DNA of 64,000 bases. It comes from Piromyces finnis finn. Lineage: Eukaryota > Fungi > Neocallimastigomycota. The position numbers and the translations under genes are program-made. The stretch spans positions 62,001 through 126,000 of the forward strand of contig MCFH01000022.1 of NCBI GenBank assembly GCA_002104945.1, in the 5' to 3' direction. The notes beneath the pieces were generated by a model. It worked only from the letters and a program-made list of their open reading frames with translations, ran no database searches and was not told where the DNA came from. This document shows positions 1,614-53,765 of this stretch, piece after piece. Numbering within the stretch: the stretch's first letter is position 1; every line of letters begins with the position of its first letter.

Positions 1614-2277
1614 TTGTTACAATGTTATATATTTCTTATATAATAACTTATTATTATCTTAATTTAATAACTTGAAGTTATTAAAAGTGATAATAATTTG
1701 TAACAAAAAAAAAAAATAAATAATTTGTTTTATTAAAACACAAAATCTATAAAAAAAATATAATGTTTTATTAATAACTATTTTATTAGTTAAATTTTAT
1801 TAAAAAATAATGTGTTTATGATTATTAACTATACTAATAATAATGTTTAAATAAAGGAATTAAAAGATTATTTATATTTTTCTATTAATATAAACTTTAA
1901 TTTATCTTCTTTAATTATGTTTTGTTATAAACAAATATTTAATTATAAATATCTAATTATTAATTACATTATAGTTTATTTACATGTTAATAATATCGGA
2001 ATTTTAAAAATAATTATTTGTTTATTTATTTATTTTTTACTTAAATACTAATTAATTATAACTAAATTTAACTTTGTTTTGAATTATTATTTTAATATTT
2101 ATTAATTTATTTCTACATTTAATTTTATCTTATTTATTTATTTATTATAAATTTGTTTTTAAGTTTAATATTAAATTGTTAATTAGAACTTACTTATATA
2201 ATTTTATTTCTTCATTAATAATTATTGTTGTTTTTATAATCATTTAAGTTTGCCTTATATCAAAAATATCATAAGCT

Positions 2278-2349
2278 GGGGATATAACTCAGTGGTAGAG
2301 TGCTTGCTTTGCATGCAAGAAGCCTCGGGTTCGATCCCCGATATCTCCA
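2278..2349 (+). tRNA. tRNA-Ala(TGC), copy 1
   Basis: Acceptor stem GGGGATA/TATCTCC with G3:U70, anticodon loop TT-TGC-AT, T-loop GTTCGAT. Confidence 0.95.
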
Positions 2350-2713
2350 TTAACTGACATTTTTATACTTAGTATTAAAATATGAATATAAAATATATAA
2401 ATTTATTTTATTAAGTAAATGTGTGAATTATTAAGAGTTTAATTGGATTTAAGTTATTAAGTTTAAAAGTTAGGATATATTCTATTAATTATATAATAAA
2501 GTAATATTGTTAAATTTTAATAAGAAATAATTATTAAAAATTTTTATTGAATTATTTTATTTAATTTTTTTTTATTACATATAGATGATAATTACAAATT
2601 ATTTAAATATTAAATTTACTATAAAATGAATATTAAAAATCTCACAAAGAATTTTTAAAATTACTCTTTATTCCTCTTATTTATATTTTTATTTTTAATA
2701 TAATATTGATATT

Positions 2714-2942
<229 letters not shown>

Positions 2943-3567
2943 TCTTTTATAATTTAAAATATTTTATAAAGTAAACTATCATTAATATATTATTATTTTT
3001 TAACCACAAAATACATTTCTCCTATTTATTAAAATAATCGTAATAATGGCTATTGGAAAATGTCTACTGTTTCTTATTGCTAAATGGTTATGACCTTTCT
3101 GGTCTGTTATATTGAAATTTCAGCCTAAACGCTCCTTAATACATTTACATAATTAATAATTGTACTATATTCTTTATTTATATGATTTTGTCACATATGA
3201 TCCTGTAGACCATGCATATTAACCACCGCAATGTTCCATTTATTACGAGAAAGGAATGTTGCTTGCGTTTTTGGTTTGTTTATTTATGTCAACACACATT
3301 ATTAATCTTCTAATTTAAAATGTACCATGTATACTTGTCCATCTCAGGTAGGCAAGATTAGTGTCATTATTATGATAATAAATTAGAATTCTCGATCTTA
3401 ACAATATAACCTAACATATCACAAAACCTAGGGGTGCATATTCGAACTAGTGGCAAAATATTATTATATTAATATTTAATCAATTAATAGTTTCAAAATT
3501 ACTATATTTCATTTATATTTAAGAAAAAATGTACAAAAAAATAATTAACAAGTTTTTTTAAAATTAA

Positions 3568-3639
3568 TGCCTATTGACGGAATTGAACCACCGACCTTCG
3601 CTTTACAAGAGCGACGCTCTACCACTAAGCCAAACAGGC
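3568..3639 (-). tRNA. tRNA-Thr(TGT), copy 1
   Basis: Reverse complement GCCTGTT...AATAGGC-A; anticodon arm TCGCT CT-TGT-AA AGCGA; T-loop GTTCAAT. Confidence 0.93.
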
Positions 3640-3647
3640 ATTACATT

Positions 3648-3718
3648 TGCGTTAACGGGGAATCGAACCCGGGCCATTTGCTTGGAAGGCAAATATTCTA
3701 CCTCTATACTATTAACGC
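3648..3718 (-). tRNA. tRNA-Gly(TCC), copy 1 (one T-stem C:C mismatch)
   Basis: GCGTTAA...TTAACGC-A; anticodon arm TTTGC CT-TCC-AA GCAAA. T-stem is CCGGG/CCCCG here but CCGGG/CCCGG in copy 2. Confidence 0.88.
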
Positions 3719-4873
3719 TTTATGCATTGATTTGTGTTAAGGAATGAACATAAATAGTTGAATTAGCTAGAATTTTAGGATTTAACCTTCAACTATTTAT
3801 ATTCCTTACTAGTGTTTAACTCTATTTTTAAAATATAAAAATTATAATATATAATTTTTATACATTTTTCTAGTAATTATTAATATTTTTATTATATAGT
3901 TATATTATTTGTATATAGTTATTTAAGACCTTTATTATTAGTATTAGTATAATTACTTATAATATTTTATACTTATAAAATTTTACAAAATTTTATTATT
4001 AAAATAGTTATAGGTATTTTATTATTATTTAAGGTTTATTTTATTAATTAACTTTATTGTATAATATTTTATAATTTGAAATTATGACATAGAATTTAAT
4101 TATAATTTTTACTAAAAGAGGCAACTGTTACACACAAAACAGAAGATACCTCGACAGAAAAATTATTATTTATGTCTAAAAAAGGGCATAATTAATTGAA
4201 TAATATAATTTTATTATATGTCATAATTAAATATATAATATATGATATGCAAAAATGTTACACATATCATAAATTAAAAATTTATTAATTATAAATTAAA
4301 AATTTTTCTATTCAAATATTAAGAGATTATTCATAATATATATTAAGGATTTAATTAATATATGTTACAGTGAATGATCCATATATTATGAATGAAATCA
4401 ATTTAAATCCTTAGCTATCCAAAACCATTAAATTTCAAATAATGGATAGTTGGAAAAAGTACGAGGATTTTTGAGAAAAATTTTAAAAATTGAAAAATCA
4501 AAAATAAATTAAATGAATAAAAATTAAAATTAAATAAATTTTTATTTTTATAACTATTCAAGTGTTTTGTGATATCTTATTTGAACCGTAGCATTTGTAA
4601 TACGCTACTCATATAAAAACATAATAAAAACTAACTGAATATACACGACTTAACCCATAGTAACTTATATGTAATAATTATATTATATTTATTATATAAT
4701 AATAATTATTAGCTTTAAATTAATAATATAAACTATTATTAAAATGTGAAAATAAAGGTAAAATTAGAAACTTAACTTAATGAGTTTATTATAAGAAATT
4801 ATAATAAACAAAACCAAATGTATCAGAATTATTTTGTGTATTTAATAGTTTTTTTAATATTTATTTTATTACT

Positions 4874-4921
4874 TATTATTATAAGATTAATTATAATAAA
4901 TAACTTTATACAAAATAATAA
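4874..4921 (+). repeat. 48-bp perfect direct repeat, left copy
   Basis: TATTATTATAAGATTAATTATAATAAATAACTTTATACAAAATAATAA, identical to 17678-17725. Confidence 0.92.
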
Positions 4922-5256
4922 ATTTTTTTGAATCATTTGATAAAATTAAAAATCATTTTATTGATATAAATTGATAGATAATAATTATAATAAAAATAAT
5001 TATCTAATATTAAATAATTATATTAAAAATATTATTTATAATTTATTATAATATAAATAATTATTTAACTTATGTATATTATACATTAATATATATTAAT
5101 AATTATTATATGTATATATATAAATATGTATATATGCATTTTAAATAATAATATATTTATATAATAAAAAATAATTTTATCTGAAATTAAAATTTATAAA
5201 TTGATTTTTTAATATAATTAATAATTATATTTAAACGTTTCTATTTAATTAACAAA

Positions 5257-7422
5257 ATGGTAACGTATCTAAATTTTGATTTATATAGTAACGAAGAAAT
5301 AGAAAAATTAGCTATTTTAATTTCAAACAAAAATGAATTAACAGATAATACTACTGCTTATATATTGGATCCCCAATTACCGTGTAAACAATGTAAAAAG
5401 ATTATTGAATGTCCTGGTCATTTAGGAAGAATTTCAATATATCAATATATTGTACATCCATTATTCACAAATGCATTATGTAAGGAACTTTGTCATCTAT
5501 GTCTTACCTGTAAAAAATATAATAATATAATTAAAAATGAATTAGATTGTTGTAATTCATCAGTTAAAAATATTACTTTTTCATTACACAAATTTAATAC
5601 AAATAATAATTATCCAAATGATAGTATGAATAAATACATAAATAAAAGAAATGAAAATAAATTCCAATCAGAATATGCATTTTTCTTTGGAAATCAACGG
5701 ATAAGTGTTATGAAAATGTATGAATTAATTCGTACTTCTGATTTCAGTAATAATCAGGAAATAAAAAATAAATTATTAAATGTATTTATTAAAAACATAC
5801 CGGTATTACCAATAAATATGAGACCGTCCATCATGGATTCTAATAACATTATAATTCATAATAATATAACATCCATGTATATACGATTATTAGAGTTAAA
5901 TCATTTATGTAAAGGTAATGTCAGTAATGGATATGCATTAAAGGTATATAATTTATATAAAAAAATTCTTGGAATTCAGAGTTCCACTGAAGCTACTACC
6001 GAAAGTTCGGATAAAAGTTTCATTAAACAATTATTATCAGGAAAGACAGGAATATTTAGAAGTATGTGTTTAGCTAAAAGACAAAACTTTTGTCTTCGCA
6101 GTGTTATTGTACCAAATATAAATATACCTTTGGATAAAGTATTGATATCAAAAGAATTTACAGATCAATTAATTCCTTATGGATATAAACCTAATGACTA
6201 TGTAATTATTAATAGACAGCCTACACTCCAAACTACTTCTATACTTTCCATTCGATCATTTCCTAGTAGTAGCCGAACCATTCAAATCAATCCATTAATA
6301 GCTAATGTTTTCCAAGCTGATTTTGATGGTGATGAAATGAATATTTTTTGGCTTCCAGGTGAAGAGTCTAAAAAGGAGTTAGCAAGTAAATTAAATATTA
6401 AAAATAATTTTCGTTCATTTAAGGATGGTTCACTTATGATTAAATTTATTCAAGATACTTTAACTGGTTTATACAATATGACAAGAGATGAACATATTGT
6501 TGAATCTCATGTTCTCGAAAATATATGTAAAAAATTGAAAATATCAAAGAAAAAATGGAATTCATTTTGTAAATATTACAAGTCTCGAATGAATACCGAT
6601 AAAATACCATATAAGTACTTACTTTCATTGTTACTTCCGAAATCACTAACTTTAAAAATGGGTGACGAATATTTAGTAGATCATGGCATTTTACTTCATA
6701 CTATCAATGGTGCTAATCAAACAGAATTGTTAAATTCCATTTCTCATTATGGTAACGATTTTTATTTAAAGTTTATGTGGGATGTACAACGTATGGTTCA
6801 TGAATATAACTTATTTCATATCATAAGTATTTCCATTTCAGATTGTATACCAGATACTGAACTTGAATACAAATTTAATTGCATTTTGGAAAAGATTCCC
6901 GATACTTTATCAACAATAACCTTGTCAAATATAGATTCGTATATCTTAACTTCGGGTAAGCACATTGATGGTAAATTAAAAGAATTATGTTTAAATAGTC
7001 ATTATGTATTAGTAAAATTAGCAGAAGCACTTGATAATAATTTAACTAATATTATCAATAGTGGATCAAAAGGATCAGGTGATAATCTTATTCAAATTTT
7101 AACATCGTTAGGAACTCAGGCTATATTACAAGAATGTTTTATTAAAAGAGGATATTCAGAAGGACTTACAGCCAAAGAATTATTTATCCATTCTAAATCA
7201 GGTCGTGCAGGTATTATTTCCACTTCACTTAATACTTCCTCTACAGGTTATTTACAAAGAGAGCTTGTCAAAAGCATGGAAGATATTGTAACCGATAAAG
7301 ATTTTATTGTTCGTGATTATAATAATAATGAAATCTATTATTATCCATTTTCATCAAATACTATTGATATAGATGATTCATTCTTAGAATACACTTATTC
7401 GATGTCAATCATTAATAAATAA
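5257..7422 (+). CDS. Divergent, intronless RNA polymerase largest subunit (RPB1/beta-prime type), N-terminal part ending just after the bridge helix; probably from a large DNA virus
   Basis: Clamp Zn motif CKQC...CPGHLGRI, SGKTGIFR...KRQNFCLRSVI, INRQPTL, catalytic QADFDGDEMN, SGSKGS, bridge helix TSSTGYLQRELVKSMED. 721 aa; no trigger-loop/jaw region and no CTD. Confidence 0.88.
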   Translation: MVTYLNFDLYSNEEIEKLAILISNKNELTDNTTAYILDPQLPCKQCKKIIECPGHLGRISIYQYIVHPLFTNALCKELCHLCLTCKKYNNIIKNELDCCNSSVKNITFSLHKFNTNNNYPNDSMNKYINKRNENKFQSEYAFFFGNQRISVMKMYELIRTSDFSNNQEIKNKLLNVFIKNIPVLPINMRPSIMDSNNIIIHNNITSMYIRLLELNHLCKGNVSNGYALKVYNLYKKILGIQSSTEATTESSDKSFIKQLLSGKTGIFRSMCLAKRQNFCLRSVIVPNINIPLDKVLISKEFTDQLIPYGYKPNDYVIINRQPTLQTTSILSIRSFPSSSRTIQINPLIANVFQADFDGDEMNIFWLPGEESKKELASKLNIKNNFRSFKDGSLMIKFIQDTLTGLYNMTRDEHIVESHVLENICKKLKISKKKWNSFCKYYKSRMNTDKIPYKYLLSLLLPKSLTLKMGDEYLVDHGILLHTINGANQTELLNSISHYGNDFYLKFMWDVQRMVHEYNLFHIISISISDCIPDTELEYKFNCILEKIPDTLSTITLSNIDSYILTSGKHIDGKLKELCLNSHYVLVKLAEALDNNLTNIINSGSKGSGDNLIQILTSLGTQAILQECFIKRGYSEGLTAKELFIHSKSGRAGIISTSLNTSSTGYLQRELVKSMEDIVTDKDFIVRDYNNNEIYYYPFSSNTIDIDDSFLEYTYSMSIINK

Positions 7423-7707
7423 ATATTGATAAAATATTAATATTTATAACCATAAAACTATATTAAAATAATAGTAAATATATTATATTATATATATATA
7501 TATATATTATATATTATGTATATATTATTTATAATTGGTATTTAAATTTTTTTAATAATATCAAATATTATAAACTTTATTATTAATTTAATTAAAATTA
7601 TAGGTATTTAAATCAATATTTATTTTATTAAATTGAATTTATAATCAAATCTTTTATATATATATAATATTAAAAAGAAATTATTTAAACATATTCAATA
7701 ATATATT

Positions 7708-7873
7708 ATTTATATATATTACATTTATTTATATATATTACATTTATTTATATATATATATTACATTTATTTATATATATATTACATTTATTTATATATA
7801 TTACATTTATTTATATATATATATTACATTTATTTATATATATATTACATTTATTTATATATATTACATTTAT
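7708..7873. repeat. Minisatellite: 8 copies of TTACATTTAT separated by variable (TA)n
   Basis: Counted directly; units are about 19-23 bp. Confidence 0.9.
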
Positions 7874-8270
7874 AATATTAATTTATAATATTATATATAA
7901 TTTTTAATGTAATAGTAATAAATTATTTTATTAAATACTTATTTAATTAAAATTTTAATAAAGTTTTTTTAATAATTCAAAGATATTAAAATAGATTATT
8001 TATACATTATGAAATTAATTATACATTACTAGTAATATATATATATATATATTATTATACATATACATATATTCTATATTATATATGTATATATATATAT
8101 ATTCTATATTATATATGTATATATAAATATATAGAATATTATACATATTACAATTACTTTTAATATAAATAACGAAATTTTTAAAAATAATTATTTAAAT
8201 AATAACTAAATAAATATAAAATTTAAAAAAATAATTTTATGCATCTATGATAATATTAATATCTTATTAA

Positions 8271-10499
8271 CTAAAAAAACATATAAATAGAATTATTTTT
8301 GAAAGATGAATAGATAGATCCATCTAAATTTCTTTTTAATAATAAATAAGGTTTATTAAGAATAGTTGATTTTAATATTTCTATGGATGCTTTACATGGA
8401 TAATAATCTTCATTATTCCATACACCATAGATAATAACTTTTTTATTGTTTTCATTTATAATACTATAATGATATGCAGTTATATTTTTAATATTCTTAC
8501 ATAAAAAAGAAAATGATGGTAGTGTATTATATAATTCATCATTATCTTTCATTATTGGTATTGTTGGTATTATTTCTGAATAAATCGATCTCCATAAATA
8601 TACCTTTTCATCTGAAAATTCCTTTTCTGTTATTAAAACTGTTTTATTATCTGAAACATATTGTTTAATGTATTTAGTTAATATAGCATTATCTATAATT
8701 GAAATTGAATTTTTTTTATACATAGAAAAAATAGCTTGTACAAAATCATCATTAAAATTGAACAAATTCTTATCTGAACTTAGTACATATTCATACCTAT
8801 AATTAGGAAGTACAAATAATTTACATGTGTTTAACATTATTATTAAAAAGGGAAAAGAAGAATTACAATTGTATACATAATCAAAAACACAATATGGATA
8901 TATATTCATATTATTATCTACTGAAAAAGATAGTATATTAATATCATTGTAATTATAATTTTCATTTATCAGTTTTAATTGCTTATTCTTAAACTTTTCT
9001 TTTATACAATTTATTAATTCGTGTTGACTAGGAATATTAATGTATTTATTACAATTAGAACATATTATAAATTTATTATTTATTTCTGGAATATCAAAAT
9101 ATTGTCTATATAAATCTTGTAATTTGTAACCATAAGAAATAAATAAATTGGAAGGAAATTTTCCTTTACAATGTTTGTCTAGTTTATAAGTAATATTAAA
9201 ATAAATAGATGATTCTTTTTCTTTGTACTTTCTTATCACTTTAACACATTTAGGAACAACATCTAATTCTAATACTGAATCAAATAATAACTTTTTATCA
9301 TGAAACGCAAAATTATTATCAGTAGAATTTTTATTTGTTGAAAGAACAATTTTATATCTTGAATTTTCTGGTGATCTATAATAATTATTATTCCACTGTA
9401 CATATGGTATATTATTCTTAATACATTCTTCTTTATCAGCGATTACTGGTAATACCTTATCCTTATTATTAAAATATCTAGTATAATATTTTCCAAATAA
9501 TCGATTATAATTTATTTTTAATGGAATATTTATTACTTTATTTCTTTTATAATAACTTACATGAAAATCAATGTATAATAAATAAAGATATTTTAACATT
9601 ATTTTAACCGTCATATACATATACCATTCTAATTCTTGAAATTGAATAATTTCTGTAAATTGTTTATACTTGTTATAAAGTTTCATATTCAATGACTGAT
9701 TAAAGATATTTATTGTATATACCAATTTTTCATTATTTTTTATTATATCTTCATTTTCATCGGTATATATATAGGGATATAAAGAATATTCATATAACAT
9801 CAAATCAAATAATTGGAAATTTATATTTATTGGGTATGTAAAAGAAACAATACTTGGTTTGAATCTAATTAGTAATTGATTACTTGAATAATTTAAACAT
9901 GGTAATAATTTACAAATAATATTATCATAAGTATCTCTTTTATAAAATATTATTTTATTTCCAGTGATTCTTATACTATCATGACAACATTTAATAATTA
10001 TGAAATTATCTGAATCTTTAATATCCTTACTCTTATCTTCTGCAATTAACACTTGATTATATTGATATGTTTCAGTATATCTTTTATTAAAGTAATGATA
10101 ATAATTTATTCCTTTGATAAAAGCAGTTACATATTGACAAGTACTTGGTAATTTTAACTTTATTATTTTATTATAAATATCTTTAAGTGTATATGAAGGT
10201 ATATTTATAGATATATAAAAATTTGTTTTAGTTATATCTTTCAAATCAAAATTATATTTAAATATCTTTTCATTACATAATTTTTCCAATGAATTAATAA
10301 GTAAAAAATTATTCAGATTATCATTTATATTATTATTGCTATAGTTAATAGTATATTGATCTTTAGTAAGATTATTACAATGAATGATACTTATTCCTTC
10401 AAAGAATGAAAAATATTCATTATTAATTATTATTTTATGTTCATTAGATAAATATTTTTCATTTTGTAATAAATTACGAATTAAATTAATAATTTCCAT
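8271..10499 (-). CDS. 742-aa intronless protein of unknown function; weak resemblance to the NCLDV/poxvirus early transcription factor large subunit
   Basis: A long uninterrupted ORF in very AT-rich DNA argues that it is coding. The product resemblance is by eye only (YTRY..LPVI..YYRSP..VVPKC..GKFPSNL). Confidence 0.6.
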   Translation of the reverse strand: MEIINLIRNLLQNEKYLSNEHKIIINNEYFSFFEGISIIHCNNLTKDQYTINYSNNNINDNLNNFLLINSLEKLCNEKIFKYNFDLKDITKTNFYISINIPSYTLKDIYNKIIKLKLPSTCQYVTAFIKGINYYHYFNKRYTETYQYNQVLIAEDKSKDIKDSDNFIIIKCCHDSIRITGNKIIFYKRDTYDNIICKLLPCLNYSSNQLLIRFKPSIVSFTYPININFQLFDLMLYEYSLYPYIYTDENEDIIKNNEKLVYTINIFNQSLNMKLYNKYKQFTEIIQFQELEWYMYMTVKIMLKYLYLLYIDFHVSYYKRNKVINIPLKINYNRLFGKYYTRYFNNKDKVLPVIADKEECIKNNIPYVQWNNNYYRSPENSRYKIVLSTNKNSTDNNFAFHDKKLLFDSVLELDVVPKCVKVIRKYKEKESSIYFNITYKLDKHCKGKFPSNLFISYGYKLQDLYRQYFDIPEINNKFIICSNCNKYINIPSQHELINCIKEKFKNKQLKLINENYNYNDINILSFSVDNNMNIYPYCVFDYVYNCNSSFPFLIIMLNTCKLFVLPNYRYEYVLSSDKNLFNFNDDFVQAIFSMYKKNSISIIDNAILTKYIKQYVSDNKTVLITEKEFSDEKVYLWRSIYSEIIPTIPIMKDNDELYNTLPSFSFLCKNIKNITAYHYSIINENNKKVIIYGVWNNEDYYPCKASIEILKSTILNKPYLLLKRNLDGSIYSSFKNNSIYMFF

Positions 10500-10672
10500 T
10501 AATTATTAATTAACCATACGGTTAATATCGTTTTATTTAAAACTTAAAATAAAATATTTAAAATTAGAATACAATTCTGAGTTTAAATTGTAGTTAGTTT
10601 TTTACTATTTTTAACTTTAGATATAATATTTTATATCGTTATTTAAAATTCACATTATTTCTATTCTAAATA

Positions 10673-11353
10673 CTACATCTTGTTTCTTTTACGATTTTTA
10701 AATGCTATACAACAGCAACACATACAACTTATTATAATACCAATAATAATAATAATACTAATATAAACTACTAAATATCCTAACCCTTCACCTTCATAAG
10801 GACCATTAACATATAGCTGTGAACATTTACCATCACTACACAATTGAGATGAACATTCTAAATTCGACTTACAAGATTCTTTATAGCCTTTACCACAATA
10901 CATATATCCACTATTACTTTTAAACAATCTTGTACGACTATAAATAACATCACAATGGCTTATTTCTGTATTATTAGTGATTGTGCATATTCCAGTTGCA
11001 CGTCCGTATTGTTTAGATAAATCAGTCATGATAAAACATTCATTATATAAACACTCTGAATCTTTATTACAATATCTATGAACTATACAATTATTACTTT
11101 CTATATCAGATCTAGAACACATATTTATAATATATTCAATCTCATTTCCATTTATATCTGGAATATTAATATAACCTTGACCTAGGTCATATTGCATACA
11201 AATGTCGTTTTTACAAAAAAAAGTAAGATAATATTTATTACGAATCTTCAAAACTTCATTTTTACTAATTGGTCCTATCATTTGATATCCATAAATCATA
11301 CAAGTCATTTCAATACATAATATTAAATAAAATATATTATTTAAAATTATCAT
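10673..11353 (-). CDS. Cys-rich single-pass membrane protein (Dickkopf-N-like Cys pattern)
   Basis: Hydrophobic N-terminus, about 14 ectodomain Cys (C..D.EC....C; CGK...E.C..N.EC.S..C..GKC), C-terminal TM helix followed by CCCC and a basic tail. Confidence 0.7.
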   Translation of the reverse strand: MIILNNIFYLILCIEMTCMIYGYQMIGPISKNEVLKIRNKYYLTFFCKNDICMQYDLGQGYINIPDINGNEIEYIINMCSRSDIESNNCIVHRYCNKDSECLYNECFIMTDLSKQYGRATGICTITNNTEISHCDVIYSRTRLFKSNSGYMYCGKGYKESCKSNLECSSQLCSDGKCSQLYVNGPYEGEGLGYLVVYISIIIIIGIIISCMCCCCIAFKNRKRNKM

Positions 11354-12573
11354 TGTTTAATAATTATATTACTATAATCTATTATTTAATTAATAAAAAT
11401 TGCAAAGAAATATACTACTGTTAAAAATATAATATATTTTTATTAATTATAAAAATATAGTATAATATATTATGAAATTGTAAAATATACTATATATTTA
11501 ATAATAATATTATAAATTTTTTATTGTTTAAATAGTATTGTGTTATGAAAGTATTTTAGAAATTAAATAATTATTAATTTTAATTATAAATTTTATATTT
11601 AAACTTATTTAATTATAATAATAATACCAATATTTATATATTATAAATTAATTCAAAATTTATATTTAAAATAGTTATAATATTGAATAAATTAATTTAG
11701 AAATTATATTTATTTAAAATAATTAAAATATTTATAGAATGTTGAAATTAATTATTATTAAATAATTATTTTATATATTATTAAATTAATTTATTTAAAA
11801 ATACTAAAATATATATTTTATAAAATATAAAATATATAAAAATCATTTTATAAATATATAAATTATTAATTTTAAGTTTATTTATTTTATATTTCATATT
11901 AACTAACTCCCTACTATATTTATTACTATTAATTTATACATATATATATGTATATATATATATAATTATAATTAATAAATGTAAAATCCAATTCACATCT
12001 TATATTTTGTACATTATTTATTATATTATTATTTTTTATTCTAAATTTTATATACAATATTTTTATTATTTATTATAGTATTTATGAGTATAGTTCATAC
12101 AATAATAATAAGTATTTATGAATATTTGTAAATAATTAATATATTATGTTAGAAGTATTGTTAAAGGATTATTAAATATTTTGGATTTTATTAATATGTC
12201 AGATAATTTATGAATTGTTAGAAGTTATTAATATACCAAATATATTTTGAATTAATTATTTAACTGGTATTATATTAAATTTTAAGTATTTTCAAATGTT
12301 TTTATAATCTGTTAATTTGTTGTTAAAACAGATATTTAACATATCTGGTATTATATATTATAACAAATAATAGAAATAGGTTTGTTAAACTAGAATTTAG
12401 ATTATTATTTAACAGATATATTTAGTATTATGATAGTTTTAAATAATTTTTATAAAATAAAAAAAAATAATTTGTAAATATAAACTGATTTTTTATAAAT
12501 TTCATATATAAAAAAATATAATAATATATTATTGTATAAAAATAATCTTCTAAAGTTGCCATTAAAAAATAAA

Positions 12574-15500
12574 ATGAAAAATTTTATATTATTAGTTATT
12601 TATTTAATAACATTAATTATTAATGTTACTGCTAAAAATAATATTGATGCTAATTGGATGAGTTATATCAATGATAATATACGAATTAATCAACTTAACA
12701 TTCCTGGAACACATGATTCTGGAACATATGATATAGGACAATTATCTAATAATAAAGTTTTAGAATCTTTAGTTGAAAGATCTATACTTGCACCTTATTC
12801 TCAAGTATTAGGTGGACTTACTCAAACACAAGAACTTGATATTACTGAACAATTAGAACATGGAATTAGATATTTTGATATAAGACTTACAATAAGCAAT
12901 AAAAATGATAAAAAACTTCATTTAACTCATGAATTCATTCCTTGTATAAATATTAAAAATAAATATAAATATTTATATTTTTCTGATGTATTAAGTGAAT
13001 GTTCAGAATTTTTAGATAAACATTATAATGAAACTGTTATTTTACATTTAAAAAGTGAAGATCTTCCTTCAGGAATTAATTCTACTCATGTAGCTAATTT
13101 AATATTTAATGATTTAGATAAATATCGTGCTAAAATATATACACTTAACTCATTTCCATCTCTTGGAAAAGTTAGAGGTCAAATGGTAATTGTTACACGA
13201 GATGAGTTTAAAACAGATTCAATTTTAGTTGATGATACATATAAAAAAGTTTCTATTGGTAATGTACTTTCATGGAAAGATATGGGTGGATGTGAAAAAT
13301 ATAATAATAAATATGATTGTTGTCCTAAATTAAATGGAGATTTGCGTGTTCAAGATGCTTATAATTTAGATGGAAGTGAAAAATGGGAATTAGCTCGTGA
13401 TATAATAGATAATGCAATTTTTGGTTGTAAATCTCAAAATGAATTTTTAACTATTAATGATATTAATAAATTGACTATTAATTTTATGAGTACAGCTAGA
13501 GCACATTCTTTTAGTTTAGAAGCATTACCACAATTAATACATGATATATCATTTGATGCTGGAATAGAAGATACAGCTAATTATGTAAATACAAAATTAA
13601 CTAAATATATCCTTGAACGAGAAAAAAATTTTCAAAACAAAATGTTTAACAATGAATGGATTTTTTTAGATTTTCCATCACTCGATGTTGTTCGTGCAAT
13701 TTATCAAAGTAATGGATATTTAAATCCTGAGTTAACTGCAGATAAAGTTGAAATATCTGACAAAGAATATATAATTGCTAATGCTAAATATTATGTTGCA
13801 TTAATTCCAATGGTAGGAAGTGCTGCAGCAGAATTAACTGGTGCTGTAATTGATGTTACTGCAACTATTGGAGAAACTATAGTAAATACAGTTGAAAGTG
13901 TAGCTGATGCAGTTGGATCTTTTTTCAAAGGATTTTTTTCTAAACGTGAAATTAGCGAATATGTTAAAGTATGTCTTCAACGTAAAACTTTAGCTAATGG
14001 TAATGAAATAGTTATAGTTAATTCTAAGTGTAAAAATAATCCAAAAAACAAATGGACTATTAATTCACATAATGAATATTATAATATTATTTCTGGATAT
14101 GATAGTAAATGTTTGGAATATGAAAATGGAAGCTTAAATGTTGTTAAATGTAAAACTAATCGAAAAAATCAAGATTTTAGTATTAAACATGGTGTTATTT
14201 GTTCAAGAATAGATGGATATAAATGTTTAGCTGGTGTGTTTGATATTCTACCAACACCTTTAGAATCAAAAAAATATGAAGGATTATCATGTTCTAAAGA
14301 TATTATCAAACGTGGTTATAAATGTTGTTCTAATCAAAATGCTAAAGTTGAAAAAGTTGATAATTATGGTAACTGGGCTAAAGAAAATGGTGAATGGTGT
14401 GGTATTGGGTATGAAAGATGTTCATTTGAAGTATTAGGATATCATTGTTGTTCATCTATTAATCCAAAAGTTGTCAAAGAAGATTCATATGGAAAATGGG
14501 GTGAAGAAGATGGAGAATTATGTGGTATTGGTGAAATGAATAGAGTTGTTACTTATAGAATTCGTAATATTAAAACTAAGCAATGTGTTTTAGTTAATAA
14601 TAGTGATGGTAATTTAATTGATTTAGGAGAGTGTACTACTTCGAATCATAGTTTATGGCATATTGCAAATGTCGATGAATATAACAACAAGAAAATTACA
14701 TCTGTTAAAAATGGAAAGTGTTTATATGCTGCTAATACACAAACATCAGGTTTAGAAATTTGTGAAGATGTTATGAATATTAAAGATCGTTATATGCACT
14801 TTGAAATTATTGAAGATAAATACTTATGTGTTAAAAATAGTAGAAATTTAAAATATAGTTGCTTAAGTAGTAAATCACTTAATTTTGAAGAATCATATGA
14901 TAAAAACGATGAAAGTTTCCAATGGGAAATACAAGATATAGATGAGGGTGTTATTGTTATTAAGGAAAATGATATATATAATCCTGATAAAAATAATGAT
15001 CCTCCAAAAATTTATCAACCACTTGATTTTGATTGTCCAATAGATAATTTCCCTTGTTGTTCTGATAATACTGAAATCATATATACTGATGAAGAAGGTA
15101 ATTGGGGACTTGAAAATGATGAGTGGTGTTTTATAAATAAATCAACTACAACAACTACTATAATATCTACTCCTACTTCTTCTGAATGCTATTTTGAAAC
15201 TTTAGGTTATTCATGTTGTCCTTCTGAAATTACAGAAGTAGCTTATACTGATGAAGATGGTAATAAATGGGGTATTATTAATAATGAATGGTGTGGTATT
15301 GTTGATCAAACATCTAGTACAACTACAACTACTTCAACTACAATAACTACAACAGTTAAACCATCTGCTACTATTAAACCTGGTCATACTGTTTATTGGT
15401 TCTATCATTCCTCTACAAATAAGTGTTTATATGCTCCTGAAAATGTAAATGGAAAAATTAAGATTAAATCATGTGATGATTCTAATTATTCTAAATGGAT

Positions 15501-16344
15501 GGTATTACCTTCTCGTAAAGGTTATTTCTATTCAATGGCTTATCCTGATTATTGTTTACAAGTTGATGATGAAAATAGTGGTTCACTTGCTTTAGGTAAA
15601 TGTGATGATCAAGCTAAATTAGAACATACAGATGATGCTTTCTTTAAATTAATTGGTTCTGATGATAAATGTATTGGTATCTTAGATGAAAATGATATGT
15701 ATAACAATGAAATAGAATTAAACTTAAATACTTGTATTGAAAGTGATAATGAAAAATTTTATGTTTGGGATAAACAACCAGATATTATTTGTTTTGCTGA
15801 AAATCTAGGTTACCAATGTTGTTCTGATCCTGAAACTATTGTTATTACCACTGATGAATATGGTGAATGGGGTATAGAAAATAATATGTGGTGTGGTATA
15901 TTAGGCTCTGAAAATAATATTCATAATATCACTCCTTCTATTAAAACTGAAACTTATTATTTATACAATTCATACACAAATAAATGTATTCATTCCAATG
16001 GTGTACTTAATGATAATATTACCTTGAATGATTGTGATTACTCAGAATATTCTCTTTGGGATGTTCCATATACACATGATGGTTATTTCCACTTAAAGTT
16101 TAATAATGATCATTGTCTAATGCTTGCCGATGATCTTTCCTTAATTTTAGGTATTTGTGGAAATGAAAGAACTAAATTTTATCGTAATGGTAATTATATT
16201 ATGTCTCCATTATATAAAAATATGTGTATTACATTAGATATTAATAATACTTTAGTTATGACTGATTGTAATGAATTTGATAATACTCAATTATATTACT
16301 TTAATCTCTGGAATGAGAATTCTATTGAATTAAATGATAATTGA
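12574..16344 (+). CDS. Secreted PI-PLC X-domain protein with four ricin-B-like lectin modules and five fungal dockerins (CBM10)
   Basis: Signal peptide from ATG 12574 (the listed start at 12532 is TTG). IPGTHDSG and QLEHGIRYFDIR are PLC-X motifs. Five CC..V..D..G.WG.EN..WCGI-type repeats, ricin-like CL...C...W repeats and Thr-rich linkers; no introns. Confidence 0.85.
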   Translation: MKNFILLVIYLITLIINVTAKNNIDANWMSYINDNIRINQLNIPGTHDSGTYDIGQLSNNKVLESLVERSILAPYSQVLGGLTQTQELDITEQLEHGIRYFDIRLTISNKNDKKLHLTHEFIPCINIKNKYKYLYFSDVLSECSEFLDKHYNETVILHLKSEDLPSGINSTHVANLIFNDLDKYRAKIYTLNSFPSLGKVRGQMVIVTRDEFKTDSILVDDTYKKVSIGNVLSWKDMGGCEKYNNKYDCCPKLNGDLRVQDAYNLDGSEKWELARDIIDNAIFGCKSQNEFLTINDINKLTINFMSTARAHSFSLEALPQLIHDISFDAGIEDTANYVNTKLTKYILEREKNFQNKMFNNEWIFLDFPSLDVVRAIYQSNGYLNPELTADKVEISDKEYIIANAKYYVALIPMVGSAAAELTGAVIDVTATIGETIVNTVESVADAVGSFFKGFFSKREISEYVKVCLQRKTLANGNEIVIVNSKCKNNPKNKWTINSHNEYYNIISGYDSKCLEYENGSLNVVKCKTNRKNQDFSIKHGVICSRIDGYKCLAGVFDILPTPLESKKYEGLSCSKDIIKRGYKCCSNQNAKVEKVDNYGNWAKENGEWCGIGYERCSFEVLGYHCCSSINPKVVKEDSYGKWGEEDGELCGIGEMNRVVTYRIRNIKTKQCVLVNNSDGNLIDLGECTTSNHSLWHIANVDEYNNKKITSVKNGKCLYAANTQTSGLEICEDVMNIKDRYMHFEIIEDKYLCVKNSRNLKYSCLSSKSLNFEESYDKNDESFQWEIQDIDEGVIVIKENDIYNPDKNNDPPKIYQPLDFDCPIDNFPCCSDNTEIIYTDEEGNWGLENDEWCFINKSTTTTTIISTPTSSECYFETLGYSCCPSEITEVAYTDEDGNKWGIINNEWCGIVDQTSSTTTTTSTTITTTVKPSATIKPGHTVYWFYHSSTNKCLYAPENVNGKIKIKSCDDSNYSKWMVLPSRKGYFYSMAYPDYCLQVDDENSGSLALGKCDDQAKLEHTDDAFFKLIGSDDKCIGILDENDMYNNEIELNLNTCIESDNEKFYVWDKQPDIICFAENLGYQCCSDPETIVITTDEYGEWGIENNMWCGILGSENNIHNITPSIKTETYYLYNSYTNKCIHSNGVLNDNITLNDCDYSEYSLWDVPYTHDGYFHLKFNNDHCLMLADDLSLILGICGNERTKFYRNGNYIMSPLYKNMCITLDINNTLVMTDCNEFDNTQLYYFNLWNENSIELNDN

Positions 16345-17122
16345 ATATTTAAATTAAAATAATATTTATAAAATAAAATAAATAATATATAAATTTAGAT
16401 ATAGATTAGAAGTTATTTAATATTAGTTTTCAAAATTTCTTTTGTAATTATAAAATTTAGTTTAATAAAATAAATAATTTTTTAAACTTTAAAAAACTTA
16501 TTAACTATATTTTTCACAAATAAAAAATATTAAGTGGTTAAGATCTATTATATTCATAGTTAGAATTTATTCAATCTATATATAAATAATTATAAATCTA
16601 AAATAGATTATTTCTCAATAAAAAATATAAAAAATAAAATTATAAAGTATAATGTTTTAATTAAACTTATAAAAGTTTATAAAAAAACTAAACATTATAT
16701 TTTTTAAAAGACTTTAATTTTTTTATAATATATTACATAAAGAATTTAACATATTATATTTTAAATATTTATATCGATTGATAAATTCTTATTTTATTTT
16801 TTTTTATATTTTATTAATTTTATACAAATATTTTTTTAAAATGATTATAAAATCTATAATAAATTTATTAAAAATTTATTAAATTAGGATTCATACTTTT
16901 ATACTTTATTTTTTATTATAATTTATTTCTATTACCGTTAAAAAAAATATTATAATTTATTTCTATCATTAATTTGAAATATTATTTAATAAATTTTATT
17001 TTTTATTTAATTATATAATTTTATTTATTTTATCATACTTATTTTTCATATAAATCATACACAATATTTATTTACATTAACTTTTATAATTTATTCATTA
17101 CATAATTATTTAACTACAAGTA

Positions 17123-17371
17123 ATGGCTGATCAATCTGAATTAGATAAATTTTTTGAAGAATCTCCTTTGTTTGAGGAAGATAGAAAAAGAGAACAAGAA
17201 GAATTGAAATTATTAGAAAAAATGTTACATAATGATAATATATTGGATAAATCACTTCGTTGTAAAAGATGTTTGAATAATAATATTGATATGAGACGTA
17301 TACAGCTTCGTCGTACTGATGAAGAAGCTACATTGGTATATTATTGCTTAAATTGCAATAGAATTATTTAA
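17123..17371 (+). CDS. Minimal TFIIS-C/RPA12/RPC11-type zinc-ribbon protein (82 aa)
   Basis: CKRC...IQLRRTDEE...YYCLNC matches the CxxC..QxRxxDE..CxxC ribbon and keeps the acidic DE pair. Confidence 0.82.
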   Translation: MADQSELDKFFEESPLFEEDRKREQEELKLLEKMLHNDNILDKSLRCKRCLNNNIDMRRIQLRRTDEEATLVYYCLNCNRII

Positions 17372-17388
17372 ATATATATATATTAAGT

Positions 17389-17445
17389 ATATTTAATAAT
17401 ATATTTAATAATATATTTAATAATATATTTAATAATATATTTAAT
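17389..17445. repeat. 12-bp tandem repeat ATATTTAATAAT, about 4.7 copies
   Basis: Read directly; starts 17 bp after the TFIIS-like stop codon. Confidence 0.85.
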
Positions 17446-17677
17446 TATACTTACATATTGAATAAATAATTAATACATGTATTGTATATGTATAATAATC
17501 ATTAATTTATCTATTATAAATCAAGATTAATAATATTAACAATATTAAAAAAAAATAGTATATTAATTATAATTATATAAATGTAAATAATTTAAATATA
17601 ATTTAAAATATAATTTAAATCTAAATTAATATTTTTAAAAAATATAATATAAAATGATAAATTATTAAAATATATAA

Positions 17678-17725
17678 TATTATTATAAGATTAATTATAA
17701 TAAATAACTTTATACAAAATAATAA
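17678..17725 (+). repeat. 48-bp perfect direct repeat, right copy
   Basis: Identical to 4874-4921; flanking bases differ on both sides. Confidence 0.92.
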
Positions 17726-18730
17726 CTCTTGATTTCTCAAATCGAACTCAAGAGTACTATTTATATGTTTTATTCTATTAAATTAAAATTTCTAAGAACA
17801 TTCTAATCTTAACAAGAATCTTTTTAGGAAAAGACTAGAAGAAAAACCTAAAAAGTTATTTGATTGATATTCTAATCATACCAATCATCGTAATATTAAG
17901 TAAAACCGTTGATAACGGGTAAAACCTTAATATCCGATTTCCTATTACATACTAATATATAGTTGTATAATATTATTAATGTAATTAGTATGTGCTTTAT
18001 CTTTTATAATACAAGTATATATATAAATGAATGTATAAATACATAATTAAATAAATTAATTAATCTAATATAGCGAATGAATAATTATTAACTAAATAAA
18101 TATTTACAATATTTAACTTAACAAATAACTATAATAATAAATAAATATATTAATATAATCTAATGGATTAATGATTATTAACTAAATAAATTATTTGTAA
18201 TATTTAATACTAAGAATAAATAATAAGTATTTATTCTTACATTATAATAAAAATAAACGATAATAACCCTTAAAAATGAATGAATAATAATTTTATGAAA
18301 ATATAACCCTATATAACCCTTACTTAAATAAATAATATTCTTTATTATATAATAAATTCTGAGTAAAAACGACCTAATAGTGATAATAATAAAATAAATT
18401 ATTAAATAAATAAAACGCCTTAATCTAATAATGTATAAAAATAATAAAATAATAATAAATAAATAAAAATGAATAAACAAACTAAAAATAAAATGGTACA
18501 TCAAATTATTAATTCTAGTGTTTATCCAAGTGTTCTTTAGAAATTCTCTTAAACTTATAAATTAATAAATAACTAATTGAGTAATTATTACTAAAATGAT
18601 AAACTTAAAACCTGGAAATAGAACAATAATAACAATTCTAAAGATAAAATACAGAACTCTTTTATGTTTCTGTATAAAATGAGTGTTTATAATAATTGAT
18701 ACTTTTAATATTTTAATTTTGTTATATTTT

Positions 18731-18840: not shown

Positions 18841-20042
18841 TAAATTTTAATTATTTTATTCAAGGTATTATACATTTAATGATAGTCAATGATAATTTAT
18901 AATAATTTTTCTAAATTTAAGCATTTTGAAGTAATAAGAAAATCAAATAAGTAATATTCTATAATATTTTATAATACTAAGACATAATTTTAATTTATTC
19001 TTTTAATTTTAATAAATAATAACAATAGTAATAATAATATTTAATAGTTAAAAATAATAATACATGTAATAATTGAAAATGTATAAAAGAAAGATAAAAT
19101 TCTTCTTTATAAAGAGGGGACAATAAATAGAGAATAAAAAAGACAATAAACAGATAATAAATAAATTATAGAATATAATAAAGATTTAATTTAAAACATA
19201 ATAAGAGTTTATTTTCGAGTTTTGAGTGATTTATTTGTTAATTATAAAGCATATTTTTTTATTTTATTTTAAATTTATTGTTTCATCATTGTAAAGAAAT
19301 GTGTCTTTAACAATAAAACAAATTATAATATTTACTAAATAACTTAGTAATATTAACACTTTAAAATATTCTGTAAATTATTAATTTATAAAAATATCAT
19401 TAAAAACACATAGAATTTAACTTAATAAGTTAGTGTTTAATAATATAATTATTTATTAATAAAATCTCGATTCTTTAAAATATTTGGGAAAATTCACTCG
19501 TATTTATACTAAAAATTTTTTAAATTAATTTATAAAATTTTTTCAACTTAAAATTCTTAACCAATCAATAATCTTCATATAAAATAAAATTTAAAAATAA
19601 AATAAAATAAAATAAAATTATAATTTTTTTAAAATAGTATCTATGAGGTCTCGAACTAGTGTCATTCAGACTCAAAGTCTTAGCTACTAACCACTAAGAC
19701 AATTTAGTTATTTCTAGTATTCATTACATGGTCCTCCTCCAGGATTCGGATACCAGACGAATCTAGAATTTTAATATTTAAATATATGTTTTTCTTTTTT
19801 AATAAACTAAACTAAGGAGTGAATTTTCTTAATTATAAAAATACATTTAATATAATAAAATACATTTTTTTTTTTTTTTTTAATATTACTAAAGTTAAAA
19901 ATAAAATATTGATAAATTTGATATTAATAAATTGTTTAATAATAAAATTGATATTGATAATGATATTAATAAGTTTTGATAATAATAATAATTGTGATTT
20001 TAATATTAATAATAAATATAATTTGAATTTTTTAACTATTTT

Positions 20043-28079: not shown

Positions 28080-28093
28080 ATAAAGGACTTCCA

Positions 28094-35652: not shown

Positions 35653-35983
35653 AGAATGAAAAAAAAATGAGAAAATTATTACAATACAAAATTACTTCAA
35701 TTTAACTCATCACATTTAAAAATTGAAATTTCAAAAATTTTTATATTCACTATTTTTTAATTATAAAATTTATTTTTCAGCTTATTATTATTAATATTTT
35801 TAATATTAAATTTTAAAAAAATTTCAAAAAACATAAAAAACCCTTTAAAATCAAAATTTCAATTATGACAGTTGTACAACATAAAAAATTTCAAAAACAC
35901 ATTTTGTATACAATACATATATGTATTTCATAACAAAATTTCATTTTTACCAATTTTTGACAACTTTTGAAATTTCGCGAAAT

Positions 35984-36489
35984 TGTAAAGAACTAATGTT
36001 CAATAAATAAAAACACAAATATATAAAAAGGAAAATAATAAAAGCAAATAAAAATTTTATTATTGAACACTTAACAAAATTATAACAGGTTAGTGTTTAA
36101 TAATTTTATTTTTATTATAAAATTTCTTTGTTAATAAAAACTCGAATTCAAAATAATTTTTTGAGAAATTTCACTCGTATTTATATAAAAATTTTTAAAA
36201 GTAAATTTATAAAAATTTTACAACTTAATTTTTTAAGCCAATCAGAAATTATCTTCTTTGGTAAAATTTCGTTATAAAATATTTTAATAATTAAAAAAAA
36301 GATATTAATGAGGTTTCGAACTCGAGTAGTTCAAACCAAGGTCTTAGTTACTAACCACTAAGACAGGTTACTAATTTCTATGATTCGTTACATGGTCCTC
36401 CTCCAGGATTCGGATACCAGACGAATCAACTAAATTTATTTGTTACTTTATTATAAAAGAAATAATTGAAACGAGTGAATACATTTTGA

Positions 36490-36533
<44 letters not shown>

Positions 36534-42912: not shown

Positions 42913-42966
42913 TCGTGTTTATTCAGCTAGTTTTTATTATGTTTTTATATGAGTAACGTATCAATA

Positions 42967-47343: not shown

Positions 47344-47904
47344 AGTTAAGAATGTACATATAAAATTAAAATTATATATTAAATTCTTACATATAATTGA
47401 TACGAAGAAAAATATTATCTTAATTCTATAAATGAATATAGAAAGTGATAATATTTGTATCTAAAAAATAATATTTAATAAATAAAATTTAAAGAAAATA
47501 AAAATAAATGATTTTTATACTTGTTCATTTTCAAGTATTAGTTAGTTTTATAAAATATAGTTTATTTAATTATAAATTTTGATATTTAATAACTCTAGTA
47601 TTATTAAATATATATTTTATTATGAATACATCTCGGTATGTATGTGAATATAATTATAAGTATTATTTTAATAAATTTAATATTATTATCTAATTTTTCT
47701 GGATTATTAGGAACATTTTTAAAAATAAGTAATTCTATCACTATTTATACAAAATTATTATTTTAAGATATAATTATAAACAAATATAAACTATTTAATT
47801 TAAAAAGAAATAAACAATTAAATAAACAAAAAGTTTACATTTATAATTTTTAATTTAATAATTTTATACATGTTAAATATTTTAAATTTTTATCTATATT
47901 TTAA

Positions 47905-53593: not shown

Positions 53594-53765
<172 letters not shown>

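Follow-up and report, generated by a model that had tools for sequence, protein, structure and literature searches.

Endogenous fundsalphavirus elements have been described in the gut fungi Piromyces, Anaeromyces and Neocallimastix (Gong, Zhang and Han 2020, Virus Evolution, PMC7017919). The lineage is marked by a polymerase split into RP1n and RP1c and by its association with retrotransposons, and Piromyces finnis is among the hosts (PMC7017919). Junctions, a VETF-L-like gene, TFIIS, or the PI-PLC/dockerin pair considered below are not reported in that study (PMC7017919). The DNA described here comes from P. finnis contig MCFH01000022.1 (GCA_002104945.1), and all coordinates refer to a window of 64,000 nt, positions 62,001-126,000 of the forward strand. 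Within the window a block of virus-like genes interrupts a dispersed repeat. The block and its relatives share with the published elements the hosts (P. finnis, Piromyces sp. E2, Anaeromyces, Neocallimastix) and the RP1n and RP1c split; PolB, D5, a D6/D11-like SNF2 protein, a SAM methyltransferase and RPB2 are common to the published elements and to complete relatives of the block. Both the published elements and the block lie in retrotransposon-rich surroundings. In contrast to them, the block, a fragment of 12.8 kb, lacks PolB, which served as probe in the PMC7017919 study, and its target site, with a 48-bp duplication, can be read base by base.

Two other kinds of insertion offer a comparison. 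Polintons/Mavericks and Starships are, as the block, large gene-carrying DNA in eukaryotic chromosomes, endowed with virus-like or cargo genes. They encode an integrase or a tyrosine recombinase, have terminal repeats or defined ends, and make short duplications; the block differs in lacking their enzymes, their defined ends and their short duplications. Foreign or organellar DNA captured at breaks, such as nuclear mitochondrial copies and fragments of non-integrating viruses, is usually accompanied by small deletions or short duplications. Such captures resemble the block in being one-off fragments of arbitrary internal content, lacking an enzyme of their own and terminal repeats, but among them a duplication as long as 48 bp, clean and placed at a hairpin base, is unusual.

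Giant-virus-like integration junctions are rarely readable in eukaryotes, because the pre-insertion target is not known. In the present case the interrupted repeat has sister copies, and the event can thus be read to the base: a single insertion duplicated 48 bp and has one of its edges at a conserved hairpin. This is concrete evidence on the entry of integrase-less virus DNA into a fungal chromosome. An earlier note on this DNA had spoken of an undescribed virus-derived element; the lineage was already known, and it is the unusually clean junction that sets this copy apart.

The split repeat and its duplication

The 48-bp direct repeat bounding the block is perfect, as the earlier note had it, and extends by zero bases beyond either side. 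The longest chance repeat measured 17-26 bp in 30 Markov simulations of the window, and the remaining exact dispersed repeats of at least 30 bp in the window are LTR pairs, transposon copies, tRNA-cluster copies and tandem arrays. The 48-bp repeat is not a product of chance, and is the only one of its kind in the window.

The block splits one copy (E1) of a repeat, E, found three times in the window and dispersed as LTRs are (Table 1). The two pieces of E1 are complementary, since 252 + 272 - 48 gives 476 bp, against about 482 bp in E2, and the termini of E1 are well formed (TG...CA, with short inverted ends), so that the earlier description of a normal E copy with correct ends stands. The 48-bp segment occurs once in E2 and once in E3, between the same conserved neighbours as in E1; the block was correctly taken to be later than E. 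A hairpin folds in all three copies, with z-scores from -3.8 to -4.5 and a compensatory change in E2. Its stem starts at 17725/17726, and the right copy of the duplication ends at 17725, hence at the hairpin base, as had been noticed.

The history of E1 itself had been drawn too simply. A target duplication of 4-6 bp was not found around E1; the five bases to its left read TTATA and those to its right TACTA, at odds with the TTATA duplication formerly assigned to it. E1 and E2 resemble each other over 12 nt immediately beyond the left terminus, which suggests that E1 may not be the simple solo LTR it had been thought to be. E2 and E3 are 77% identical, and flank a nested younger element and a pol fragment; each is closer to E1 than to the other. 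No clean full-length E element was found in the window or in related loci.

Ty3-type elements and a tRNA cluster surround the block, and with matching composition place it in fungal chromosomal DNA. All five genes of the block have open ORFs, and the terminal genes sit about 300 bp inside both block ends, which fall in intergenic DNA. At a coding density of 73%, random breakpoints would place both ends outside the terminal genes about 7% of the time, a hint of preferred ends. In a P. finnis copy a palindrome has its centre upstream of RP1n, and the left end of the block is near the corresponding position. This proximity, together with the intergenic ends, was counted against capture at a random break.

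Table 1. Features of the inserted block, of repeat E and of the block genes (window coordinates)
Feature	Position	Strand	Description or basis
Inserted block	4922-17677 (12,756 bp)		five open genes; endogenous NCLDV-like (fundsalphavirus-type) genome fragment
48-bp target duplication, left copy	4874-4921		exact identity with right copy
48-bp target duplication, right copy	17678-17725		exact identity with left copy
E1, left piece	4670-4921 (252 bp)	+	starts with TGTAAT, 48-bp segment at end; homology to E2 and E3
E1, right piece	17678-17949 (272 bp)	+	ends with ATTACA; 82.5% identity to E2, 77.9% to E3
E2	33748-34229 (~482 bp)	-	dispersed repeat E copy
E3	43285-43727	-	dispersed repeat E copy
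Conserved E hairpin	17725-17755	+	folds of E1, E2 and E3; 48-bp duplication ends at its 5' base
RP1n, N-terminal half of split RNA polymerase largest subunit (721 aa)	5257-7422	+	Pfam Rpb1 domains 1-5
AT-rich spacer between two convergent viral genes	7423-8270		19-23-bp tandem repeats at 7687-7905, two palindromic stretches
VETF-like early transcription factor large subunit, predicted TBP-like fold (742 aa)	8271-10499	-	homologues, Foldseek
226-aa protein, hydrophobic N-terminus, no Pfam domain	10673-11353	-	partner gene of PI-PLC gene
Secreted PI-PLC-X / ricin-lectin / 5x CBM10 (fungal dockerin) protein	12574-16344	+	Pfam; signal-peptide-like start
TFIIS-type zinc-ribbon transcript-cleavage factor (82 aa)	17123-17371	+	Pfam Zn_ribbon_TFIIS

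Viral transcription genes and their relatives

On the basis of best hits, and of Pithovirus-type fold hits of the VETF-L-like protein, the block represents part of an endogenous NCLDV-like element belonging to the fundsalphavirus lineage, in line with the virus-derived origin first proposed. Public read sets yielded a complete relative, about 42.4 kb long and mapping as a circle (or in circularly permuted form); it carries PolB, D5, RPB2, a capping methyltransferase, SNF2 and RP1c, and is small for a virus-like genome encoding its own multisubunit RNA polymerase. RP1n, the VETF-L-like protein and TFIIS of the block are 75, 64 and 67% identical to their counterparts in this element, with 77-79% identity at the DNA level. 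PolB, D5, SNF2, SAM methyltransferase, RPB2 and RP1c are all present in the 42-kb relative and in P. finnis copies, and none is in the block, which is thus a fragment, not a whole element. Without RP1c and RPB2 the block alone cannot build a polymerase, and replication genes are also absent. P. finnis holds the genes of the block singly and in different arrangements.

RP1n homologues of about 720 aa occur across gut fungi, the nearest in P. finnis, Anaeromyces and Neocallimastix; the counterpart in the 42-kb element is a 717-aa gene. The metal-binding loop is conserved, and Pol III structures can be aligned over the active-site loop. The large subunit is divided into two genes where the archaeal A' / A'' split lies, and a separate RP1c gene is present in relatives of the block. 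Compared with a P. finnis copy, RP1n has a dN/dS of 0.15, which with the open ORFs fits a recent arrival, and would also fit retention for function.

The 742-aa protein had been set down as an orphan. It has homologues of 726-748 aa. In Foldseek it pairs with the VETF large subunit from Pithovirus, Marseillevirus and iridoviruses, at E values as low as 2e-12, and TBP cores and a chain of 708 residues in the poxvirus pre-initiation complex were also matched. By its predicted fold, in a weak structure model (pLDDT 55), the protein belongs to the early-transcription-factor large subunits and includes a TBP-like domain. Its gene adjoins TFIIS in the 42-kb element, where the neighbouring TFIIS gene encodes 80 aa. 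The similarity to the early transcription apparatus of poxviruses and other NCLDVs includes the match to VETF large subunits and TBP folds, TFIIS and polymerase subunits, and an SNF2 partner in relatives of the block. Sequence identity to those proteins is about 10-13%, and the polymerase large subunit is here split into two genes. The gene list of a little-studied lineage is sharpened by the replacement of an orphan with a candidate early-transcription-factor large subunit.

Routes of entry

The block may have arrived when viral DNA was captured, as a single event, at a staggered break inside repeat E, with subsequent fill-in and no element-encoded enzyme involved, a reading to which we give about an even chance. 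The target would have been broken with a 48-nt stagger, by one nick at the 5' base of the E hairpin and a second on the other strand at a distance of 48 nt. Host end-joining or replication-restart machinery would then have joined a free viral DNA piece between the two ends, and filling in of the single-stranded overhangs would have left the 48-bp segment on both sides. The viral fragment would have been static in place since insertion. We infer the staggered break, the joining pathway and the arrival in a single step from the product. Integrase, transposase or recombinase domains were not detected by Pfam in block ORFs of at least 80 aa, and inverted repeats at the block ends do not rise above the AT-rich background, as the earlier note had observed. 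Long flanking repeats were not found at other viral fragments among the related loci. For ordinary end joining a stagger of 48 nt would be long, which counts against the capture route.

Alternatively, the two E pieces may be what is left of a single full-length E retrotransposon, one from its 5' LTR and the other from its 3' LTR. Viral DNA would have replaced the interior and the LTR parts next to it through deletion plus insertion, and the 48-bp overlap would be accidental, reflecting where the breakpoints happened to lie in two LTRs still identical by then. The other LTR pairs of the window are 99.5-100% identical, and a perfect 48-bp match is therefore to be expected between LTRs of one young element. 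The resemblance between E1 and E2 outside their left termini, and the imperfect 5-bp flanks of E1, point in the same direction. Yet two breakpoints must have stripped every internal base, leaving exactly one LTR plus 48 bp, and random deletion does not predict a breakpoint exactly at the hairpin base. A gag/pol remnant is absent from the block, and a full-length E element is missing from the window and the loci. We regard this origin as unlikely.

The earlier note favored a segment of a virus-derived mobile element, non-autonomous and carrying cargo. Such a cassette would be moved in trans by machinery recognising structured DNA and making long duplications. The crisp duplication ending at the hairpin base, the intergenic ends and the five open genes would suit such an element, complete relatives could supply the missing functions, and a small cluster of VETF-L-like and RP1n genes recurs in another gut fungus. 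The cluster, however, differs in gene orientation and has no flanking repeats, and neither the gene order nor the junctions of the block were found a second time in the 27 related loci, a small sample. Conserved end motifs or terminal repeats of the block were not found, nor, among those genes of the 42-kb relative that could be read, a recombinase or integrase domain, and the notion of a mobile cassette appears quite improbable. There is likewise a small likelihood that viruses of this lineage leave sub-genomic modules through a structure-directed cut at the base of hairpins or palindromes, producing long duplications, and that the fungus or resident viruses then retained an open transcription module (RP1n, VETF-L-like, TFIIS). 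The left end would then be a natural genome end or a concatemer junction, as hinted at by the head-to-head RP1n palindrome in P. finnis.

Campbell-type integration, in which a circle carrying the block and a stretch of at least 48 bp identical to E underwent a single crossover with the chromosomal E, is highly doubtful. Such a crossover yields direct repeats equal to the shared core, and the 42-kb relative has a circular or circularly permuted map. Against it, the 48-bp segment and E-like sequence are absent from all 27 viral loci retrieved (a small sample), the block has only part of such a genome, in rearranged order, and 48 bp is short for homologous recombination, while a site-specific recombinase is absent. 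A misplaced or chimeric join mimicking an insertion is very unlikely indeed, even in a region so extremely repeat-rich: LTR pairs identical over 435 and 1134 bp are resolved in the window, as is a 1037-bp tandem array (5 kb), which suggests a long-read assembly, and a precise split of one repeat copy with 48 bp doubled on both sides is not expected of such joins.

Elements relying on a DDE integrase or transposase, Polintons/Mavericks included, were rejected, as the block has no such domain in ORFs of at least 80 aa and no inverted repeats above the AT-rich background, and a 48-bp duplication is far longer, as formerly remarked, than the 2-10 bp they produce. Elements using a site-specific recombinase, either prophage-like or Starship-like, were rejected as well, in view of the lack of a tyrosine or serine recombinase and of a shared core repeat elsewhere in the small sample of loci.

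Accessory genes and spacer

The 226-aa protein and the PI-PLC/ricin/dockerin protein had been considered host-type secreted genes carried as cargo. Homologues of the former sit beside a PI-PLC homologue in loci L018 and L019/L020. The best relatives of the latter are 33-39% identical; PI-PLC homologues adjoin RP1n in Neocallimastix, and others are on a viral-type metagenome contig. Occurrence of the pair beside viral genes in two independent places suggests that both are probably viral accessory genes, and makes a secreted, dockerin-bearing phospholipase-like protein a candidate addition to the repertoire of the lineage. In the AT-rich spacer, homology to other copies breaks off at 7547 and returns at 8006.

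The 48-bp duplication and the split repeat

The block of 12,756 bp is bounded by two copies of a 48-bp sequence (4874-4921 and 17678-17725) identical at 48 of 48 bases, and the match ends immediately on either side. The window is very AT-rich (24% GC), and the longest exact repeat generated by chance in 30 first-order Markov simulations of it spans 17-26 bp. The remaining exact dispersed repeats of at least 30 bp in the window are all LTR pairs, transposon copies, the duplicated tRNA cluster or a tandem array. As it exceeds the simulated maxima, and the other repeats of the window are all accounted for, the 48-bp direct repeat, on which the earlier note had built its case, is real and not a product of chance.

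The duplication falls within E, a dispersed LTR-like repeat whose structure is drawn from three copies, all residing in the window. The counterpart of the 48-bp segment is single in E2 and in E3, with the same conserved neighbours on either side. The two pieces of E1, the copy interrupted by the block, amount to 476 bp once 48 bp are subtracted, versus about 482 bp for E2. The pieces were compared separately and never joined, and the register of the flanks was derived from k-mer diagonals, which superseded a permissive self-alignment returning AT-rich noise only. Since one E copy is split, and the segment is single in the other two, the view that the block arrived after E holds. A hairpin is located directly after the right repeat and is found in all three copies of E (z-scores of -3.8 to -4.5 against shuffled sequences), one stem pair being altered on both sides in E2. 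The stem begins at 17725/17726, and the edge of the duplication thus coincides with the hairpin base, as previously noticed. Rfam matches in the window are all tRNAs, and E thus corresponds to none of the known RNA families.

The termini of E1 are well formed, with TGTAAT at 4670 and ATTACA ending at 17949. The TTATA target site duplication formerly ascribed to E1 is not borne out, the outer 5-bp flanks being TTATA at the left versus TACTA at the right; about 12 similar bases just beyond the left terminus are common to E1 and E2, and E1 may not have been a clean solo LTR. A 49-bp stretch just left of E1 (4600-4648) is 94% identical, on the opposite strand, to 42913-42961, about 320 bp from E3, and the neighbouring sequences are unrelated. 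A tandem or LTR-internal arrangement left of E1, suggested by this match, was discarded because the adjoining sequence is unlike E.

Features of the window (window coordinates)
Feature	Position	Strand	Description
RP1n	5257-7422	plus	721 aa; Rpb1 domains 1 to start of 5 (Pfam)
VETF-L-like gene	8271-10499	minus	742 aa
226-aa protein	10673-11353	minus	hydrophobic start; no known domain
PI-PLC/dockerin gene	12574-16344	plus	signal-peptide-like start, PI-PLC-X, ricin lectin domains, five CBM10 fungal dockerins
TFIIS	17123-17371	plus	82 aa; TFIIS zinc ribbon (Pfam)
E1, left piece	4670-4921		matches E2 and E3 in register, more weakly than the right piece
E1, right piece	17678-17949		82.5% identity to E2, 77.9% to E3
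E2	33748-34229	minus	dispersed-repeat copy, about 482 bp
E3	43285-43727	minus	dispersed-repeat copy
Full-length Ty3-type element	19288-25835		LTR pair 100% identical
Full-length Ty3-type element	25886-33427		LTR pair 100% identical
Full-length Ty3-type element	35982-42112		LTR pair 99.5% identical
tRNA-Ala/Thr/Gly cluster, first copy	2277-3718		1.48-kb repeat, 95.5% identical to second copy
tRNA-Ala/Thr/Gly cluster, second copy	53157-54541		1.48-kb repeat, 95.5% identical to first copy
Tandem array	47904-53138		about five units of about 1037 bp, 98-99.6% identical

The surroundings of the block are a nest of Ty3-type retrotransposons beside tRNA genes. The three full-length elements carry long open gag-pol frames, and more pol and gag fragments reside elsewhere in the window; judged from the open frames and the near-identical LTR pairs, retrotransposition here is very recent. 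One LTR (54604-55746) starts 63 bp from the tRNA-Gly of the second cluster copy, a position that fits tRNA-targeted Ty3-type insertion, which would explain the transposon nest. Exact look-ups of window proteins, RP1n and a Ty3 pol among them, matched no recorded sequence.

Viral genes of the block and their relatives

The five ORFs of the block are open, and none is broken. RP1n, the N-terminal half of a split RNA polymerase largest subunit, ends about where the archaeal subunit A' ends, its best solved relatives are archaeal A' chains, and its metal-binding loop is identical in alignment to Pol III structures. P. finnis, Piromyces sp. E2, Anaeromyces robustus, Neocallimastix and many gut metagenomes have relatives of about 717-748 aa that share 55-87% identity; beyond this family identity drops to about 30%. 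By comparison with these proteins, 721 aa is the normal length of the family.

The 742-aa protein, formerly regarded as an orphan, has no Pfam match, and its homologues (726-748 aa) are found in the same fungi as the RP1n relatives. A structure model built on 12 relatives is weak overall (pLDDT 55) and moderate at residues 60-320. Among solved structures it best matches a 708-residue chain of the poxvirus pre-initiation complex, with dozens of TBP cores ranking next; among predicted viral structures, the best matches are annotated as early transcription factor large subunit in Pithovirus, Marseillevirus, Solivirus and iridoviruses (E down to 2e-12). The predicted fold points to a VETF-large-subunit-like initiation factor, an assignment kept tentative by low TM-scores and an identity of about 10-13%. 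No relative was found in IMG/VR, queried with the single protein and with the alignment, and a single metagenome scan returned two short loci only.

Homologues of RP1n, the VETF-L-like protein and TFIIS (75, 64 and 67% protein identity, respectively) are encoded by contigs of 42.3-42.5 kb (L001-L013, Logan) recurring across many public sequencing runs, and the block is accordingly virus-derived, as had been proposed. This complete-looking relative, called here the 42-kb element, also encodes PolB, a D5-type primase-helicase, RPB2, a capping-type methyltransferase, a SNF2 helicase, RP1c (the C-terminal half of the split subunit, 439 aa), a very large lectin and chitin-binding protein (1500-1700 aa), and several unknowns; every ORF is open. 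Variants of 30-37 kb are also present. The contigs are equal in length and differ in start point, RP1n being placed 15.7, 23.1 or 25.8 kb into the contig, which indicates that the map is circular or circularly permuted. The 8-mer TAAAATGA is found 45-105 nt upstream of 9 of the 17 genes of the 42-kb element, versus 1.6% of random 120-nt windows (L001, L011), and is a candidate promoter motif of the element. It is not enriched in the block, which has only a one-mismatch version, upstream of the VETF-L-like gene.

In 2020 the gene set of the 42-kb element, split RP1n/RP1c included, was described for fundsalphaviruses endogenous to fungi, among them P. finnis, Piromyces sp. E2, Anaeromyces and Neocallimastix, in a paper that also remarked on neighbouring retrotransposons (PMC7017919). 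No other description of the lineage was found in the literature searched, and the copies described there are endogenous only. The earlier note had proposed an undescribed virus-derived mobile element, but the lineage was already known; new here are an unusually legible insertion junction, the VETF-L-like annotation, a probable dockerin-bearing accessory gene, and a complete-looking 42.4-kb relative with a circular or permuted map.

The P. finnis genome hosts large copies with the gene order of the 42-kb element, rearranged copies, and fragments that hold a single gene. Some of these fragments match block genes at 91-97% DNA identity, yet have different flanks; one P. finnis contig matches part of the RP1n gene and one LTR of the window at 97% DNA identity. 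The three viral genes share 77-79% DNA identity with the 42-kb element, and such similar values are consistent with one donor genome. Differences between RP1n and a 97%-identical P. finnis copy are mainly synonymous, and the dN/dS of 0.15 (449 codons) implies that divergence took place mostly under selection, which probably acted in replicating viruses before separate integrations.

The probable accessory gene pair

TFIIS and the VETF-L-like gene are direct neighbours in the 42-kb element, pointing away from each other across about 160 bp. In the block their relative orientation is unchanged, but they are separated by 6.6 kb holding the 226-aa and PI-PLC/dockerin genes, earlier called host-type secreted genes. 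Two contigs of Neocallimastix sp. 'constans' (L019, L020) carry, one after another, a 263-aa homologue of the former, a PI-PLC/dockerin homologue and RP1n (748 aa), the pair directly upstream of RP1n, with a copia-type element alongside. In a gut metagenome contig the pair comes after homologues of the lectin (37%) and of a 227-aa protein (50%) of the 42-kb element, in conserved order. Given viral neighbours in these two contexts, and since no close host copy of the PI-PLC/dockerin gene was found (best matches 33-39% identity), the two are probably accessory genes of the viral lineage, though the dockerin modules must ultimately be of fungal host origin. A weak CDtoxinA match in the PI-PLC/dockerin protein falls within a lectin-type domain. 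The 226-aa protein was also compared with the product of a 282-aa gene of the 42-kb element, and the two are unrelated.

Mode of insertion

The data are best accommodated, with moderate confidence, by one event in which free viral DNA was captured where the chromosome had broken. A break within E would have left a 48-nt stagger, free viral DNA would have been captured there once, and fill-in of the staggered ends would have produced the 48-bp duplication on either side. This reading is the best fit because one target is split, the duplication is clean, one of its edges is at the hairpin base, the insert is a fragment and not a genome, and neither enzyme nor end signals are present. An identical product would result from a replication template switch with exit and re-entry separated by 48 bp.

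It is unlikely that the E pieces instead represent both LTRs of a single element that had its interior replaced. The mobile cassette envisaged in the earlier note appears improbable. Domain and repeat searches agree with the note: no integrase, transposase or recombinase domain was detected in the block ORFs, and terminal inverted repeats did not rise above the AT-rich background. The gene order of the block (RP1n, tail-to-tail VETF-L-like gene, 226-aa/PI-PLC pair, TFIIS) recurs in none of the 27 fetched loci, and no exact direct repeat of at least 24 bp bounds those other viral fragments that could be inspected. In another gut fungus carrying VETF-L-like and RP1n genes side by side the two share a strand, and neither TFIIS nor flanking repeats accompany them. 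No evidence for the block as a mobile unit was thus found; the original observation, an unusually long duplication included, was essentially right, and its interpretation partly right.

Slightly less probable still is the single-crossover integration of a circle carrying the 48 bp. The map of the 42-kb element is circular or permuted; no copy of E was found in any fetched related locus, every viral locus included. As a test for circular permutation of the block, TFIIS was also looked for in Neocallimastix in the interval from the PI-PLC gene to RP1n, and was not found there. An assembly artefact is the least credible alternative, as the assembly resolves identical kilobase repeats.

At either end the block extends about 300 bp beyond its terminal gene, and the left-end region (4973-5257) is homologous to the spacer that separates a head-to-head pair of RP1n genes within an inverted duplication of P. 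finnis (L027, MCFH01000062.1:204791-226452; arms 96.8% identical). With its arms, this palindromic spacer of 534 bp (8961-9494 of the locus) looks like the junction of a concatemer or the end of an integrated genome, and the left end of the block is about 70 bp past the position of the palindrome centre, in weak alignments of AT-rich sequence. The end of the donor DNA could have been a natural terminus or a concatemer junction, an idea given low weight because of the weakness of such alignments.

In gut metagenomes (L023-L026; ENA, JGI) VETF-L-like (728 aa) and RP1n (717 aa) genes are adjacent on one strand, in DNA of 20% GC with few other ORFs, 98-100% identical across samples; this may be a two-gene remnant retained in another gut fungus. 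In the block the spacer between the convergent RP1n and VETF-L-like genes (7423-8270) has a GC content of 6-13%, and features tandem repeats of 19-23 bp along with palindromic stretches at 7411-7587 and 7923-8219. Other viral copies are homologous up to 7547 and again from 8006, and this gap may represent an internal rearrangement joint.
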